Shown here: positions 2,982 to 64,000 of the stretch, piece by piece
Layout: each line of letters opens with the position of its first letter
Numbering within the stretch: the first letter of the stretch is position 1
NCBI RefSeq assembly: GCF_001194135.2
Contig: NC_068997.1
Coordinates: 1,788,951-1,852,950, forward strand
Length of the DNA: 64,000 bases
Source of the DNA: Octopus bimaculoides
Lineage: Eukaryota
Reading direction: 5' to 3'
The notes under the pieces: model-generated
Database searches by the model: none
Told to the model about the DNA's origin: nothing
What the model saw: the letters and a program-made list of their open reading frames with translations, nothing else
Made by a program: the position numbers and the translations under genes

Positions 2982-4029
2982 ATTTTAACATGCATACATA
3001 CATACATACATACATACATACATACATNNNNNNNNNNNNNNNNNNNNNNNNNNNNNNNNNNNNNNNNNNNNNNNNNNNNNNNNNNNNNNNNNNNNNNNNN
3101 NNNNNNNNNNNNNNNNNNNNNNNNNNNNNNNNNNNNNNNNNNNNNNNNNNNNNNNNNNNNNNNNNNNNNNNNNNNNNNNNTAATTTAGTACGATCGTTTC
3201 ACAGTTAAGAGTAAAGAATTCTCTATTCTGATCTTCAGCTAAATATTCTAATACATTTGTTAACGTCTAAATAACTCACGTTAATTTTGACCATGCGACA
3301 TCAATACCACGTGAGGAAGACGTTAAGAAATTTATCGGCCAGTGAGTTCAAAATCTCTAAATACATATAGGCATCGCACCTGCTCGTATGTAGTTTCACA
3401 CATTATGCGAAATATCAACGAGGTGTATCAGAATGCCTTTGAGATATAAACATATTAAAATATACCAGCATGACCGCAGCCACTTGGCTGAAACACATAA
3501 ATAAATAAATATATCATTGGACACATCGGGTTTCTGCAAACTGGCACATTTATCAAAAATAAAAAATAACAAATAAATAAACAAACGTACAGCCCCCAAG
3601 CTCCATCAGTAACAATCAAATGAATACTGGCCTGGTTTTTTGGATTAAATATATTGGCAGCAATGAAGTCACGAGGAATAAAAAAATCGCTTAATCTTCG
3701 AACAAGCTCTAGAATTTCACATTTAACCATAGTACTACAAAGCGAGGTATATAGGTAAACAACAATTGCGTTTAGATTTATCAATATATCGTTATTTCTT
3801 TTTAGTACGATACACCATGAAATGTATTTGAAAGCATGAGTCTATGAAAGGGCTCGATAAATTTGCATGTCTAGCATTAAATCTTTAGAGATATTGAATA
3901 AAAAACATTCGCGACATATACATATCAGTGTGTATGTATGTGCATATGTAGTGACGGAGACACCATAGAAGACGTGTTAGTTCTGCAAACACGTCACTTT
4001 AGGTTTATTAAATAGGTGTTTTGAACTGC

Positions 4030-4077
<48 letters not shown>

Positions 4078-4178
4078 CGACGGGCTTCTTTCAGTTTCCG
4101 TCTACAAAATTCACTCACAAGACACTTGCCCAAGGTGCCACGCAGTGGGACTGAACCCGGAACCATGTGGTTGGTAAG
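4078..4178 (-). mobile_element. SINE family A, partial copy
   Basis: Near-identical to 17171-17300. Confidence 0.85.
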
Positions 4179-16930: not shown

Positions 16931-17334
16931 ACTCTTTTACTTGTTTCAGTCATTTGACTGCGGCCATGCCGGAGCACCGACTTTAGTTGAGCAAATCGAC
17001 CCCAGGACTTATTCTTTGTAAGCCTAGTACTTATTCTATCGGTCTCTTTTTGCCGAACCGCTAAGTTACGGGGACGTAAACACACCAGCATCGGTTGTCA
17101 AGCGAAGTTGGAGGGACAAAGACAGACATACAAGCATTTATACACACATACATATACATATACATATATACGACGGGCTTCTTTCAGTTTCCGTCTACCA
17201 AATCCACTCATAAGGCTTTGGTCGGCCCGAGGCTATAGTAGAAGACACTTGCCCAAGGTGCCGCGCAGTGGGACTGAACCCAGAACCTTGTGGTTGGTAA
17301 GCAAGCTACTTACCACACAGCCACTCCTGCGCCT
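16931..17334 (-). mobile_element. tRNA-like SINE family A, near full-length composite copy
   Basis: Minus-strand head aggcgcaggagtggctgtgtggtaag with B-box-like GGTTCAGTCCC, internal (TA/CA)n, and a body repeated at 4078, 36985, 43180 and 53370. Confidence 0.9.
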
Positions 17335-23008: not shown

Positions 23009-24794
23009 CGTGTGTGTGTGTGTGTGTGTTTGTATGTGTGTGGGTGTGTGTGTGTGTGTTCAGTCAGCCTCTGTATGTATCTTTTAACAAGGTATCTTTT
23101 CTCCCTTAGTAAATGTGAGTTCATTAAGCGTACTTCTATAAAATCATTTCTAATTTATCTACATGTACGTCTAACCACCCGCAAACTATATATCTTCTGA
23201 TATGAAACTGAGGAAAGCCAGTGGCTGAATCATTAAATATCCGTTATTTTAATAAATACCAGTAAACTGAATTACGTTTTTGAGCAGCGGAACTGTGTAC
23301 ACGACAGCAATAATTACAGGAAACTAGTAGAACTGTTCTCCAGTCGACTCTTCGATTCAGTAGAAAGTGTTTTGTAGTTATAGACATATGATATATTTAT
23401 ATATCCAATCTAATCTCTCTATTATTCGAACAGATGCAAACATATTTATTGTTCATCCACCCTCGCGCTGCTTCGGAATTTTGCTCTTTGTGTGTGTGAG
23501 TGTATGTGTGTGTTAGTGCGAGAGATAGAGAGGGATAGAAAGAGAGACAGAGTGTGTGTATGTCTGTTTTTGAACGTTGTTGAGTTATAAGTACTCGAAC
23601 TTTCGGGAGAATGTGACATAAATTTTGGATCAGTGTATCTTGAAGCTCATAAAGCTATAAGTAACTGTATGTAAATTTTGCGTCGAAGGTTAAAACATTT
23701 TTGATAGAAAAAGGTCAAACACCTTTGAAATCTACAGGAGATGTTGGTTCGCGTCCTACGAGCAGTCTTCGATATTGTTTCCGAAAGGGCTTTTCAATCC
23801 AATATATACATTTATAGCATGGTGTGCTTCGAAATACATCTCATCTTACGTTTAGAAGCGATGCACAGTATCAGAATTTTCTACTCTAATCAATTAAACT
23901 ACTCCAAATTCTTATTAAAATATCTGAGCAAGTGGAGTCTGGGCCGGCTTGTTTGTACTGACATCAATTCGTATAAGTTGTAGCAATGAAATCAAACCAA
24001 ATAGTGATATTTAGAAATCATTTAATATGTACGTTTTCAGGTCTGCATAAGACATACTAAGAAATGTATCCATTACACAAGATCTTCCTCAGTTAATAGA
24101 TTTCAAAATAGTTTGAAATGTTTGAAGCCATTCAAATGAAACAATTCAAAATATTTCGAAACATTTTGACTGAGAAAGACTTGCATAATAGTTGCATTTC
24201 CTAATATAATGCACAGAGCTTCACACAACTAGTCAGTATAATCTAAATGTTATCCAAACCAAACAAGTTTATCTATGACAAAAACAATCAATATAAATGT
24301 AAGTAATCTCAAGAAACCATAATCCCAGTAACACCTTCCTTTACCAGGAGGGACAGCTCAACATAACGATACTAAAACAGCAAAGACAAGCAGACATAAC
24401 AGATATATATTCCCATCATGAGCTGGCAAACTGATATCACTATAGTTTCTATACCTGGGCAGCGCCATTCACTCCGGCAGTGACAACAGCGTTAGAAACT
24501 TAAATGCTTTCTGGGAATTAATTGTAATCAGCAAGGGCGAAAGAACATAATATGTGCATAACGCCAACACCCGCTTATTATTACAAGCAACAACATGAAA
24601 TAAAACAATTAGTATTAACTTATAGTTACAAAGAGGCACCTACAAAGCAAAAAACTTACAGCCCAAAGGGATATTATGATCCAAACATTATAATACAAAA
24701 GAACAAGCAAACAAAAGATATGATGATATCAACTGTTCAACCACTGATACGTAGCACAATACCAGCAGCAAACCAAGCACTTAAAACATATAAA

Positions 24795-25392
24795 CTATAA
24801 AACGAACACATACGGCTAGATTCGCTGCTTCGTTGTCCATATAATTTCATAAGCACACTATAAAACGAACACATACGGCTAGATTCGCTGCTTCGTTGTC
24901 CATATAATTTCATAAGCACACTATAAAACGAACACATACGGCTAGATTCGCTGCTTCGTTGNNNNNNNNNNNNNNNNNNNNNNNNNNNNNNNNNNNNNNN
25001 NNNNNNNNNNNNNNNNNNNNNNNNNNNNNNNNNNNNNNNNNNNNNNNNNNNNNNNNNNNNNNNNNNNNNNNNNNNNNNNNNNNNNNNNNNNNNNNNNNNN
25101 NNNNNNNNNNNNNNNNNNNNNNNNNNNNNNNNNNNNNNNNNNNNNNNNNNNNNNNNNNNNNNNNNNNNNNNNNNNNNNNNNNNNNNNNNNNNNNNNNNNN
25201 NNNNAACTATAAAACGAACACATACGGCTAGATTCGCTGCTTCGTTGTCCATATAATTTCATAAGCACACTATAAAACGAACACATACGGCTAGATTCGC
25301 TGCTTCGTTGTCCATATAATTTCATAAGCACACTATGAAACGAACACATACGGCTAGATTCGCTGCTTCGTTGTCCATATAATTTCATAAGC
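24795..25392. repeat. 63-bp minisatellite, at least 5.6 near-identical copies, spanning a gap
   Basis: Units start at 24795, 24858, 24921, 25207, 25270 and 25333. Confidence 0.97.
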
Positions 25393-26149
25393 ATGATACT
25401 GCACACAAAAAACGAATAAAAGTAAATTTTGTGCAACAGTGTAATCCACAACGAACGTCCTCGAACGATGTAAGCAAAGATCAATATTTATGAAATGAAT
25501 GCTTAATATTATAAAATAAATCAACCGAAGTAAAAATAAAAGTAAAAATAAACAATAGAATTATAATTAAAATAAAAATTATATATATGTAAAAATAATA
25601 AATACAAAGCAAAAACTACATAAATAAAACAAATTAAAAGTAATGAAACGTCCTAACTAGAAAAAGACTAAATAATTCATTATTAATTAAATGGCCAACG
25701 TGCTGGTTCCTCAAGAACACAAACTACACTCAAATTACATAATAAGCTAATATATAGTTTAAATCAACACATACATCTAAGAACTATAAATATTTAAAAT
25801 TACTAAAACAAATTTATCATAACAAAATTATTCTACATATGAATAAACACAACGCGCTGCAGAGAAATTAAGGGAAACCATACGTCTTTAACCCATGGCC
25901 GCTAAAATCCAAAAGATTTATCTATCTATAGGTAGAAGTAATACCAACTCCCCAGAGGAAGTGACGTTTTACATAATAGTGAATGAAAAAGAGCCAACTC
26001 CTTCACACCCCGCCGCCATAGCAAAACTGAATGGGGATAACTATCCAGCGGAAGTGACACAGGACACAAGAGAATGACAACGAACCACCCAAAAGGCTGC
26101 TAAGCAATGATTCAACCTTACGTTTATTAAGGAAAAACTAGTACTTCTT

Positions 26150-31337: not shown

Positions 31338-32595
31338 GACTTATCCTTAAGTCGTAGTTAAATGGACGGAATAAGATGGAAGCTATTAACACCTGGGCGG
31401 TTTCAGTATTTAGATATGGAGCAGTGGTGATCGCATGGGCAATATACGAGCTAAACAGCTTAGACAGAAAGACAAGCAAGTTGCTGACTAGAAATAGGAT
31501 ACTCTGCTCCAAAATGACAAATACAGACTGTATGTACCAAGAAAAATAGGGAGGAAATGGACTGATTGGATGCGAATATCGCATTAGAGCAGAAGCCAAC
31601 ACTATAGCATGGTATCTAAAAAATGCCACTGAACCACTGTTATTGGAAGTAAGAAGGTCAGGCTTGTGTGGGATTGAAGATTGCAAAGATAAAGAACTGT
31701 ACAAGCACTTGAGAATGAATGAAACAGAAAATAGGTGGATAAAGAAAAGAATGCATGGACAATTTCATAGGGACGTTGAAGATAAGACTGGCAGAGAAAC
31801 AAGATGGCTATGGATGATAGCACACTATAATAACTCGTGTATACACGGATTAAAAACCGGAAACAGAGGCTTTAATCTGTACTGCCCAAGAGCAAGCACT
31901 AAGAACCAATTACATCAAATACAGATTAGGTAACAGATCAGAAAGTGATGAGTGCAGAATCTGTGGACAAAATGCTGAAACCGTATGGCATATTACCAGC
32001 CAATGTACGCCACTAGCCCAGAAAGAATATGAGGCGTCATGACAATATAGAAAGGAATGTCCATTGGACACTTTACAACAGATATGGGCTTGACAGAGCA
32101 AAAAAGTGGTACGAACAGAACCCCGAAGGCACCATCGAAAGTGATAATGCAAAGATCTTATGGGATTTTATGATTCAGTGCCACCATGTGATAGAGAATA
32201 GGAAACCAGACGTAGTCTTAATTGAGAAAGACAGTAAACTATGCTGGATCATATCTGTAGCATGTCCAGCTGACAACAAGGTATGCAATAAGGAAGAAAG
32301 AAAAGTAGATGGATATGACAGGTTAACTTGGGAGGTTAAGCAGTTGTGATCGATGAAAAAGGTGGTAGTAGTACCAATAACTGTCGGAGACTAGGGAACA
32401 GTGAGTAAAAATCTCGCGAAGTTCATGGAACAAATAGGGGCTGCAATAAGGCTGGAGCACTTGCAGTAAACAACATTGCTTGGAACCGCTCGAATACTCC
32501 GGAAGGTGCTCGAAAAAAAAAGGTGTTACCTTAGTTCACTGGTAGTGAACAGCTGGCAATGTAGTAAATCTCCAGCGTTAGAAGCGGTGCAAGAC
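31338..32595 (+). mobile_element. 5'-truncated R4/Dong-type RLE non-LTR retrotransposon
   Basis: GLKPETEALI..AQEQAL, zinc knuckle CRICGQNAETVWHITSQC, HDN..RNVHW, RLE motif RKPDVVLIEK, LLGTARILRKVL; followed by a (TAA)n tail. Confidence 0.92.
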
Positions 32596-32599
32596 AATA

Positions 32600-32631
<32 letters not shown>

Positions 32632-32638
32632 CAACAAC

Positions 32639-32730
<92 letters not shown>

Positions 32731-32775
32731 TAACAATAATAATAATAATAATAATACTAAGAATAATAATAATAA

Positions 32776-33060
32776 TATGTATGATAAAGGGGGTGTCAAA
32801 AACATCTAGTTAACATCCCAGGAGAACCAAGTCTGAGAGAAATCCAAAAGATTGTGCTGACAAGTACTGCCCACATCCTTAGAAAAACACTATGTATAAA
32901 AATGTCTTTTGTTTTACTTTTAGATATTTCGCTACTGATCCTGCCACCTTCTCTTCTCAAGCCTTCAGTCTTACTGTAACATCTCTTATCGTTCACTCTT
33001 TCTAGGTCGTTGGGTATGTCTCGGCAAGTGATTGCAACAAACATGCAGATTAAAAGTAAA
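32776..33060 (+). mobile_element. 3' end of a second R4/Dong-like element
   Basis: IPGEPSLREIQKIVLTSTAHILRKTL, then a 3' UTR and (TAA)n. Confidence 0.85.
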
Positions 33061-33073
33061 TAATAATAATAAC

Positions 33074-33131
<58 letters not shown>

Positions 33132-33180
33132 TTAATAATAATGTTAATAATAATAATAATTCTTATTCTTATTATTATTA

Positions 33181-33536
33181 ATACCAGCCACTGCGGGACG
33201 CGATAGGAAAGGGAAACAGAAAAGAGTGAGAAATACCAGCCACTGCAGTATGAGATAGGAAAGTTGTGGGGCATGAAGAAAGTAATGGTGATACTGATGT
33301 CAATTGGAGCATTAGGAACAGCTTCCAAGGACTCTGAAAAACATATTAATAATATTGGAGTTGCTGTCAGGCTTGAAGGGAGCCAGAAGACAGCATTGTT
33401 GGATACAGCTCATGTTCTAAAGAGAGTATTGCTTCTTTGAGTGACAGGAAAAGGCACTGCTTGAAAACTTTGGTGAATTGTTATCGTCTGCTTTCAAGTA
33501 AAAAATAAGCAGTAATTAAGAACTATCTGAGAGTCT

Positions 33537-35549: not shown

Positions 35550-36220
35550 ATAAAGTAGTTGTATGCTGCCTACTTAATGTCACAGTACCATGAAAAGAAT
35601 AATACTAGTGCTATTTATCCCATAGGAAGCAGCAACGCTTCCTGTCAGCCTTGACGCATTTCCTGTGTCCTTATGTTTACAAGGGGGAGATAATCAATTC
35701 CATCCAGCCACGCCAGCATCCAGAGACTAGTTTCTGAGTCATTGCTTGTCTTCAATCTGGAGTAGCATGCCCTGCTAGTTGGAGATGCTTATCTGGCTCT
35801 TGTAAACATATAATTATTCTAGTGAAATACATTCACTGATTTCAAAAATAGAAATGATGCATTTCTAAATTTCTCAGAGAGATTTATGCAGTAGTAATAC
35901 GATAGTTAATGCATTTCACTAGAATAATTATATGTTTACAAGTGCTAGATAGGCAACTCCAACAAGCAGGCCATGCTACTCCAGACTGAAGACGTGCAAT
36001 GACTCAGAAACTAGTCTCTGGATGCAGGCTTAGCTGGGTGGAGGTGCTATCTCCCTGTTGTAAACATAAGGACACAGTAAATGTGGCAAGGCTGTCAGGA
36101 AGCGGTGCTGCTTCCTATGGGATAAATAGCAGTAGTATTGTCCCCTTCGTGGGACTGTCACCTTAAGTTGCCAGCGTACAACTACTTTATTGTATCAGTA
36201 CTGCATAAATCACTCTGAGA
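35550..36220. mobile_element. Foldback/MITE-like structure: ~280-bp inverted arms plus a nested 29-bp TIR pair
   Basis: 35550-35833 is the reverse complement of 35908-36190; 35872-35900 is the reverse complement of 36192-36220. Confidence 0.85.
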
Positions 36221-38198: not shown

Positions 38199-38259
<61 letters not shown>

Positions 38260-38755
38260 ATGTCTGTCTGTCTGTCTGTCTGTTTGTTTGTCTGTCTATC
38301 TCTCTCTCATTGTATATGTGTTTGTGTGTGTGTGTGTATATATATATGTATCTATTTGTCACACAATGAGACACACCTGCAGCGCTGGATGTTCCTGTAG
38401 CCACTTGTAAGGGATCGATGCTAGTTGTGTCAAAACAATTGTCGCGATTAATAACAACTATCGTATATTCTATCTTCTGTCTTTATATGTATACAGAAGG
38501 AACACAACAATCGCAAACCAACAAAACAACATGCGGGAAAATAAACTATAGTACGACAAACGGCAAACAGGACACAAACAAGATAACGGATCATTCGCAG
38601 CTGATTTCCTATACAATGCACTCTCAGCCACTATTATTGACAATTAAATTCTCCCTTTTGGTTTTATATTGTGTCTAGCTACCTTTATTATTTTATAATT
38701 TTCACATTACCATTTTGCTGAATCAGCCATTAATTCGTATAGTAAAATCTATAAG

Positions 38756-38823
38756 CGATGGAGTAGTACTACTGATGAATTTTAATTTCAAGCGAAATTG
38801 GCTTGCCAATTTAATACCCTCAC
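38756..38823 (+). ncRNA. Type I hammerhead ribozyme, unit 1
   Basis: GTACTA / CTGATGA / ATTT-TAATTTC-AAGC / GAAA / TTGGC-TT-GCCAA / TT / TAATAC. The core is intact; stems I and II carry mismatches. Confidence 0.8.
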
Positions 38824-39088
38824 TCGCCTCGGGGCAGTTAAGTCCCCTATCAGTACAGAGATCTGTGCTCTTTGTGATTATAAGGGTTTTTGATACTTAT
38901 TTCTAGTAATTTAGGTGCTACAATTATCTTCAATCACTATTAGTGGTAATTGAATTCTTCCTTTTTGGTTTTATATTGTGTCTAGCCACCTGCATTATTT
39001 CATAATTTTCACATTACCATTTTGTAGAATCACCCATTAATTCGTATAGTAATATCTATATGCTGACAGACTGGATTTGACTTTATAG

Positions 39089-39160
39089 GCGATGGAGTAG
39101 TAGTACTACTGATGGGCTTTAATTTCAAGCGTAACTAGCTTGCCAGTTTAGTGCCCTCGC
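39089..39160 (+). ncRNA. Type I hammerhead ribozyme, unit 2
   Basis: GTACTA / CTGATGG / GCTT-TAATTTC-AAGC / GTAA / CTAGC-TT-GCCAG / TT / TAGTGC, with stem I extension GCGA-GG / CC-TCGC. Stems I and II are intact; the core has two substitutions. Confidence 0.75.
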
Positions 39161-39386
39161 TCGCAATGGGGCAGTTAACTCCCTTGTCAGTAGATAGACT
39201 TGCTCTATGTTTATGGCTATAAGGGTCTTTGATTCTTATTTCTAGCAATCTAGGTGCTACAATGCATACCCAGTCACTATCAGTGACAATTTCGCTTTAG
39301 GTTTTATATTGCGTATAGCCACCTAGTAACTAGAACAGTTGGCACCTATACATACTTACATACATATATATGTTTATATATGTATA

Positions 39387-39431
<45 letters not shown>

Positions 39432-39554
39432 ATATAATATAATATATATACCGTAGTAAGAACATAAATGCGAAACAAGATGGAAAAAATAGTACTCGAA
39501 TACCGGAGGTTGAGTAATATGCTTTATTAAGAAGCAGTAAAAAATATCTCAAAA

Positions 39555-43974: not shown

Positions 43975-44560
43975 GAAAAACACTCAATAAGTATCCGGAC
44001 TGTTTCCATAGTAACAAATCTAAAGAACGTAGAGTGAAGTGACTTGACATAGATTGACCTTGAACTCTACTGTGCTTGCGCACTAAATTTTACAGCAGTG
44101 CTTGGAAGGAATGTGTGTAACGTGTGATCATCGCATTGACCATCACGGAGAAAGTTGTCTAGGTGATATCTGCTCAGAAGTCCATCCAAAATTGCAGAAA
44201 GTTTATGGAGAGGTGTGTATGAGCCACACACAAGTGTACGAGGGGGTTCAGACATTTCGAAGATGGCCGTTCTGGGACGAATGTTCTGGGAGACCCGCAA
44301 CAAGCAAAACTGAAAAAACATCGCAGAAGTGCGTGCAGCTGTGAGGGGAAATCGTCAAATCACCACCCGTGAATTAGAGCATGTGCAGATTAGTTACGGT
44401 TCAGATCAGTCCATTATCATTCAAAATCTGGATATGAGACACATGTCTGTCAAGTTGGTGTCAAAACCGCTTTCAGCTGACCAAGAAACATACAAGTTTC
44501 AGTTGCACAAGATCTTGATCATGTCGAGAAAGATGAAAATGTTTGAAAACTTTCCGTAGG
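43975..44560 (+). mobile_element. Mariner-type transposon 5' remnant (HTH region)
   Basis: TIR-like aataagtatccggact; LQKVYGEVCMS..QVYE, SGRP..S, ITTRELE, ISYGS..SII...L.MR.MSVKLV.K.L (WVP-like position); disrupted. Confidence 0.85.
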
Positions 44561-63243: not shown

Positions 63244-64000
63244 GGGATTGGACAAAATAATGGAAACAGCTAGTATCATAGCATCACTATTTTAAAATAT
63301 TTGTAAAACCGTCTAAAGTTTGTTTATTTTATGTTTTTTATATATTATTAGTGTTGCTTAATACGTTTTGCTAAAATTGCTGTTTCTTTTCAGATATAAT
63401 CAGAAAAAGGTAAGTGAGTACTTGTACGGCAGGCGCTAGCGTAACGGAAACAGCCAAAATGTTTGGTGTATCAAGAAGTACATTCTCTAAAGTAATGACA
63501 GCCTTTGAGAAAGAGGGAAAAAACTCCTCCTTGAAACAAAACTCCGGAAGAAAGCCAAAACTTTCAGACAGGAACCGTTGGTCACTTACACGAATTGATA
63601 AAAAGGATCACAAAAGTAAAGCTCCCAAAATTATTGCAGAACTTAATGACTACCTCGAGAACCCAGTTTCCACAAAAACTGTTCGCCGGTAGCTGCACAA
63701 ATCCGGATTTCACGGGAGGACTGCAATCAGAAAACCACTACTTTCTATAAAACAAACGTTGCAAAGCGTTTAGAGTGGAAAAACCTACAGAATTGGTTGT
63801 TAGAGCAGTGGAAGAATGTTATTTTCTCGGACAAATCATCCTTTACCTTATTTCCGATCACCGGCCTAATATACGTGTGGAGACAGCCAAAAGAAGCATT
63901 TGACCCAGACAGCCTTCTTCCAACTGTTAAACACGGAAGAGGAATTGTGATGATCGGGGTGGGGGCTGTATCTTGAAAATCCGCCGGCCCAATGCTTTCC
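63243..64000 (+). mobile_element. Tc1-type DNA transposon, 5' part, with disrupted transposase
   Basis: TA|CGGGATTGGACAAAATAATGGAAAC TIR; GASVTETAKMFGVSRST, SGRKPKL, VSTKTVRR, RKPLL, WKNVIFSD, PTVKHG.G.VM; in-frame stop and frameshift. Confidence 0.92.

Follow-up and report, generated by a model that had tools for sequence, protein, structure and literature searches.

A 713-bp direct tandem repeat at positions 38612-39324 of the window, the 64-kb stretch of Octopus bimaculoides DNA analysed here, is probably a decayed remnant, no longer active, of a retrozyme-like tandem retroelement with hammerheads, that is, of a metazoan non-LTR retrozyme or of close kin derived from Penelope-like elements (PLEs). 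Repeat finding, self-blastn and MAFFT alignment show about 2.2 diverged copies of a unit of about 310-340 bp, and both full units present, at the same offset, the layout of a type I hammerhead ribozyme (HHR). An earlier reading of this DNA, made from the sequence only, had proposed just such an arrangement of units and layout, on which repeat finding, blastn, alignments and sequence agree. Type I hammerheads in tandem repeats of about 300 bp are already well described across invertebrates, and the array is probably a degenerate member of that known class. The array and its immediate surroundings are as follows.

38612-39324, + strand: whole array (direct-repeat families D2-D5, D7 and D8; self-blastn; alignments)
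38612-38918, + strand: unit 1, 307 nt, whose starting TACAAT recurs at 38919 and 39258
38919-39257, + strand: unit 2, 339 nt (pairwise alignment)
39258-39324, + strand: partial unit 3, 67 nt, which stops short of the ribozyme position (families D4 and D7; alignment A1)
38201-38355, no strand: (TATC)n(TCTG)n(TG)n block to the left of the array (TRF, sequence)
39348-39450, no strand: (ATAC)n/(AT)n microsatellite, about 20 nt past the right end of the array (TRF, sequence)
38608-38615 (left) and 39345-39352 (right), no strand: candidate target-site duplication CCTATACA, 8 bp, the longest word common to both flanks

The units start 307-339 nt apart. Compared with unit 1 in pairwise alignment, unit 2 has an insertion of 27 nt (39057-39083) and one more GTA, and the two differ further by 30 transitions and 15 transversions. 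Identity between units is 82-90% within blocks and 76% overall by blastn. In the same pairwise alignment the segment holding the HHR is 83% conserved between the units, as against 89% for the sequence that precedes it and 79% for the sequence that follows, so that it is conserved no better than the rest of the unit and has enjoyed no protection since the duplication. Self-blastn recovered no further copy of the unit in the 64-kb window. The window as a whole is draft assembly with a GC content of about 33%; it contains dozens of microsatellites and numerous N gaps but lacks any genuine long open reading frame (ORF). The flanks of the array are unique sequence bounded by the microsatellites (TRF, sequence); no long direct repeat flanks it, and the shared word CCTATACA has P of about 0.04-0.05, which we rate as not significant. 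Retrozyme target-site duplications, when present, are longer than 4 bp. Published retrozymes consist of units of 150-450 bp with GC below 45-50%, occur as dimers to multimers and have no LTR, PBS or PPT (PMC7229834). The array is likewise head-to-tail, with units in the range of 150-450 bp and a copy number within the span from dimer to multimer, and it is low in GC (35.6% for the monomer) and without coding capacity, as it holds short ORFs only. The ORF fragments flanking it contain no Pfam domains.

The hammerhead-like motifs, and the monomer that they would delimit, lie at the following positions.

38755-38827, + strand: unit 1 hammerhead-like motif, the sole match of the tuned descriptor (see below) in the window; predicted cut after 38811
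39089-39160, + strand: unit 2 hammerhead-like motif (sequence); predicted cut after 39148
38812-39148, + strand: the sole complete 337-nt monomer, predicted product of two cleavages (cut-site coordinates)

In unit 1 the motif reads GCGAUGG-AGUA-GUACUA / CUGAUGA / AUUU-UAAUUUC-AAGC / GAAA / UUGG-CUUG-CCAA / U-U, cut / UAAUAC-CC-UCAC-UCGC, with GUACUA at 38766-71, CUGAUGA at 38772-78, GAAA at 38794-97 and U16.1 and U17 at 38810-11. Its core is intact (12 of 12 positions right) and its helix III has 5 bp closed by a CUUG loop, but helix II is weakened by an A·C at 10.1-11.1 and a U·G pair, and helix I by a C·A mismatch, which bears out the earlier description of a unit with its core kept and its stems damaged. 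In unit 2 the motif reads GCGAUGG-AGUAGUA-GUACUA / CUGAUGG / GCUU-UAAUUUC-AAGC / GUAA / CUAG-CUUG-CCAG / U-U, cut / UAGUGC-CC-UCGC, with the GUACUA of helix I at 39103-08. Here helices I (6/6) and II (GCUU/AAGC, including G10.1-C11.1) are intact and the core carries two changes, A9G (CUGAUGG) and A13U (GUAA); all of this had been read correctly before, but an A·C mismatch in helix III had gone unmentioned. Natural hammerheads are not known to vary at A9 or A13, and most activity is lost when these bases are replaced. A 6-bp helix I and a 4-bp helix II with a 7-nt loop represent the canonical geometry of a type I HHR, as in the Schistosoma ribozyme.

The initial claim of a full type I hammerhead in each unit therefore does not hold, since both are incomplete (helix I and II mismatches in unit 1; A9G, A13U and the helix III A·C in unit 2), and a complete HHR is found only in the best-of-both consensus of the two copies. 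Active elements have been defined as those in which two or more successive units each carry a complete type I HHR, with the core CUGANGA/GAAA/UH and three proper helices (10.64898/2026.07.22.740005), and no unit of the array carries one. As each copy lacks an essential part of the ribozyme, the locus should no longer self-cleave efficiently. The defects of the two units lie at different positions, as would be expected if one functional ancestor had decayed twice independently. The predicted cut sites, after 38811 and after 39148, are 337 nt apart, and these coordinates agree with those first proposed.

Two further features had been offered in favour of the hammerhead fold. At 15.2-16.2, unit 1 has U-A where unit 2 has C-G, and this switch, which had been read as covariation, is real but amounts to one pair and two transitions in two sequences and carries no statistical weight. 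RNAalifold, applied to both motifs, prefers a rival non-HHR fold built on CAAGC/GCUUG that itself has one 'compensated' pair, so that covariation between two sequences cannot discriminate between the folds. Helix I can also be extended, since GCGAUGG is pairable with CC-UCGC past a bulge of 4 or 7 nt (AGUA or AGUAGUA), and this bulge and the 7-nt loop 2 lie at the right distances for a candidate contact between loops 1 and 2. The pairing past the bulge thus exists as claimed, but when bulges are permitted to the same degree, about 27% of randomly drawn pairs of flanks also yield an extension of at least seven pairs. A perfect 12-nt palindrome at 38762-38773 and 39099-39110 (AGUAGUACUACU; AGTAGTACTACT) shares bases with the 5' strand of helix I in each unit; AGUAGUACUACU competes for that strand, forming a rival hairpin in minimum free energy (MFE) predictions, and AGTAGTACTACT could also permit pairing between two RNAs.

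How often such a motif would arise by chance was estimated with two descriptors, both designed after the motif had been seen, and with simulation. A type I descriptor tuned to thresholds that unit 1 just satisfies has one match in the window on both strands, unit 1 itself, against an expectation of 0.003 (order-1) or 0.017 (order-3 Markov, window composition). A generic descriptor (perfect core, at least 5/6 pairs in helix I, at least 3/4 in helix II, and an A-U plus at least 1 bp in helix III) retrieves all four of the experimentally validated retrozyme HHRs of PMC7229834 (Supplementary Table 2) and has no matches in 83 kb of unrelated control loci; in the window it has three matches, unit 1 included, against 0.135 expected (about 8e-4 per unit). 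The consensus was evaluated separately by simulating a duplicated sequence with 18% divergence and accepting the better base at every column: a perfect best-of-both HHR with the observed helix lengths appeared 7 times in 1259 simulations of 59 kb on both strands, or 3e-5 per 337-nt unit, and one with minimal helices at rates of 5e-4 (helices of 5/4/1) and 1e-3 (5/3/1) per unit. The complete two-copy consensus already noted in the sequence-only reading is perfect in its best-of-both form, with a frequency of 3e-5 to 1e-3 per simulated dimer. Chance is an unlikely origin for the core together with its three helices, even allowing for the post hoc choice of descriptor.

Covariance models give the individual units little recognition. 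The Rfam hammerhead families match neither unit at the gathering threshold (34 bits for RF00163 Hammerhead_1) over the whole window, have no match at E<=10 on 1.1 kb and match neither unit in slices of 83 nt, a scale at which the listing extends down to matches of about 7-8 bits, so that Hammerhead_1, the family named earlier as a check, finds neither copy at any of these three scales. This silence does not reflect a failure of the tool, since the same slice test on 3180-3262 returns Hammerhead_1 with 25.2 bits; it counts against membership of the family, not against a decayed origin. A custom covariance model, R1, built from the four validated retrozyme HHRs, gave unit 2 a score of 10.5 bits with an E value of 1.3, the fourth best in the window, and did not list unit 1. 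Folded as hammerheads, unit 1, unit 2 and the best-of-both consensus have energies of +2.7, -8.8 and -15.2 kcal/mol, compared with MFE values of -12.5, -20.7 and -20.7 kcal/mol respectively, and the HHR fold is never the minimum. These folding results weigh little, however, because the Rfam-recognised motif at 3183-3244 folds no better than its shuffles (z = +0.3).

In the likelier of two alternatives, the array is a local tandem duplication of an ordinary sort, or a minisatellite, that does not stem from a ribozyme; its likeness to a hammerhead would be a matter of chance, inflated by picking the better base from each copy. This reading would account for the lack of a complete HHR in either copy, for the want of significant covariance-model support (Rfam; R1 at 10.5 bits and E 1.3 on unit 2), for the thermodynamic preference for other structures and for an HHR segment without extra conservation; neither the covariation nor the helix I extension is significant, the descriptors are post hoc and the single known locus lies within this window. 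It has to contend with the low rates at which such motifs arise, 0.135 per window (about 8e-4 per unit) for a single copy and 3e-5 to 1e-3 per dimer for the best of both, and with a genomic context that is the published one, a tandem repeat with low GC and units of about 300 bp, the same window also containing another type I HHR, one that Rfam recognises. We consider this explanation unlikely.

A relic of the retrozyme kind fits the array better, and the features that agree with it are the unit size, the 36% GC, the tandem arrangement, the lack of coding capacity, the type I topology and the improbable likeness to a HHR. The retrozymes Amil224 (coral), Mg353 (mussel) and Ax330/Ax353 (axolotl) are likewise head-to-tail, low-GC, non-coding repeats of a few hundred bp (PMC7229834), and metazoan retrozymes, like the array, have a single type I hammerhead at a constant offset in each unit and form arrays as short as a dimer. 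In length the unit, at 307-339 nt, matches the elements of mussel (350-390 bp) and axolotl (330/350 bp). In contrast to metazoan retrozymes, both hammerheads of the array are defective. Published retrozyme HHRs have a helix III of 1-3 bp and C or A at position 17 (PMC7229834), whereas in the array helix III is 5 bp long and ends in a CUUG loop, and position 17 is U. The array shows no sequence similarity to the four published retrozyme constructs, its best R1 match standing at E 1.3. Marked self-pairing has been described for retrozyme circles (PMC7229834), whereas the 337-nt monomer folded as a circle (-70.6 kcal/mol, z = -1.16, 27 of 200 shuffles as good, 61% of bases paired) is not predicted to be highly self-paired, a property that may have disappeared from a copy in decay. 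With the Hammerhead_1 family (RF00163, which includes newt satellite 2, Schistosoma Sm-alpha and cricket satellites) the array has in common its type I topology and satellite-like tandem context, and unit 1 also the core CUGANGA...GAAA...UH, but the model recognises neither unit at any listed score. The proposal that the array is a decayed copy from a retrozyme family is therefore supported in part, by size, GC, tandem layout, topology and chance rates, and receives no backing from Rfam, R1 or the self-pairing of the monomer.

Other hammerhead-like motifs occur in the window. On the minus strand at 3183-3244 lies a better hammerhead than those of the array, with AUUUAG / CUGAAGA / a 31-nt helix II region / GAAA / CGAUCG / UA / CUAAAU; it scores 25.2 bits with Rfam Hammerhead_1 (E 1e-4 on the slice; gathering score 34) and 16.2 bits with R1, and passes the generic descriptor. 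It abuts an N gap (3033-3179) that may hide a collapsed tandem array. The presence of this Rfam-recognised type I HHR, together with three descriptor matches where 0.135 are expected, indicates that the genome carries HHR elements. The third match of the generic descriptor, at 24008-24098 on the minus strand, is probably due to chance; its loop 2 is 39 nt long and its loop 3 is 17 nt long. An inverted repeat of about 640 bp (35550-35837 / 35904-36190), with arms 87-89% complementary, 66 nt between the inner arms and N gaps on both sides of 35550-36190, carries a HHR-like motif in each arm, at 35719-35761 (- strand) and 35980-36022 (+ strand), reading UCCAGA / CUGAAGA / ... / GAAA / CUAG / UC / UCUGGA. 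R1 scores these motifs at 19.2 bits (E 0.004) and 11.8 bits; Rfam does not list them, and their helix II is poor, with 2/4 pairs.

The window also holds repeats and element remnants of other kinds. A SINE-like element is present in several copies, at 4072-4102 and 17165-17195 (- strand), with similar translated pieces near 43.3, 50.0 and 53.5 kb; a 31-base word ending in GAAGCCCGTCGTATATA and followed by a TA microsatellite, which we take to be the tail of an octopus SINE, occurs exactly at 4072 and 17165. A 63-bp tandem repeat forms two runs (24794-24961 and 25206-25393; 2.7 and 3.0 copies, 99-100% identical) with an N gap between them, and they probably belong to a single longer array that the assembly has split. 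At 31550-33437 (+ strand) there is a retrotransposon (LINE)-like coding remnant without a Pfam match, which has 54-63% protein and about 70% DNA identity to eukaryote-like contigs (ENA ERZ25073763 and ERZ25066843), where the similar sequence lies beside RVT_1 ORFs. Tc1/mariner-like transposase remnants lie at 63414-63973 (+ strand), with a match to HTH_28/HTH_23, and at 44087-44556 (+ strand), the latter judged by eye.

A second alternative, that the units are tandem pLTR pieces of a degraded Penelope-like element, the hammerhead being its own and the coding part lost or unassembled, is in our view improbable. It overlaps with the main reading, since a recent preprint derives retrozymes from PLE pLTRs (10.64898/2026.07.22.740005). 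The hammerheads of pLTRs resemble those of the array in being placed in a tandem unit and adjacent to microsatellites (Cervera & de la Pena 2014; Craig et al. 2021, PMC8557442): PLEs have HHRs within their pLTRs and insert as partial tandems, some clades prefer microsatellites such as (TA)n (PMC8557442), and an (AT)n tract lies about 20 nt from the end of the array. PLEs are present in octopus genomes (PMC13282606), and head-to-head copies adjoining a pLTR are typical of Penelope-like insertions (PMC8557442), a structure seen about 2.6 kb upstream of the array in the inverted repeat with a HHR-like motif per arm. However, the array unit and the inverted repeat at 35.5-36.2 kb have no sequence in common, and no reverse transcriptase (RT) or GIY-YIG domain is found in the ORF fragments on either side of the array, a region with assembly gaps. 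Moreover, the hammerheads of metazoan PLEs are minimal, with a very short palindromic helix III and without loop contacts (PMC7229834), whereas the helices of the array motif are of full, canonical length.

For the relic of a retrozyme or its close kin, the mechanism of active families (Cervera & de la Pena 2020, PMC7229834) suggests how the array may have arisen. The ancestor would have been a non-autonomous element, either a metazoan non-LTR retrozyme or something closely related that came from the repeat flanking a Penelope-like element. In its multimeric + strand transcript a type I hammerhead would have folded in each unit and cut after position 17, releasing monomers of about 337 nt with 5'-OH and 2',3'-cyclic phosphate ends, which a tRNA ligase of the RtcB type could then have circularised. 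The reverse transcriptase of a retrotransposon would have copied either the circle or the multimer into DNA as a head-to-tail array. We infer from the anatomy of the repeat that such ribozyme activity, an RNA circle and retrotransposition lie in the ancestry of this locus. The approximately 2.2 units would since have diverged by about 15-20% without constraint, a different essential part being lost from each copy, namely helix II and one helix I pair from unit 1, and A9 and A13 from unit 2.

Searches for relatives returned none: a 29-base pattern had no match in metagenome contigs, and a 75-aa frame spanning unit 1 had no protein match. The three matches of a 21-base pattern and the single viral match of a 19-mer are all chance, being confined to the seed. 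In the literature we searched, papers on retrozymes, PLEs and octopus repeats among it, neither hammerheads nor retrozymes are reported from octopus, and the papers of those three kinds report no hammerhead retrozymes from cephalopods. It is conceivable, if somewhat doubtful, that intact kin of the array elsewhere in the genome form an undescribed cephalopod retrozyme family, which would be expected to combine a canonical type I hammerhead with a helix III of unusual length and cleavage at U17, and to yield abundant circular RNAs of about 337 nt.

Taken alone, the locus, an inactive relic, leaves current views as they stand. If a family were confirmed genome-wide, hammerhead retrozymes would extend to the cephalopods, the known ribozymes of this class would gain a variant in which helix III is long and cleavage is at U17, and repeat annotation would gain a class that is now probably filed as 'unknown' or as simple tandem repeat.
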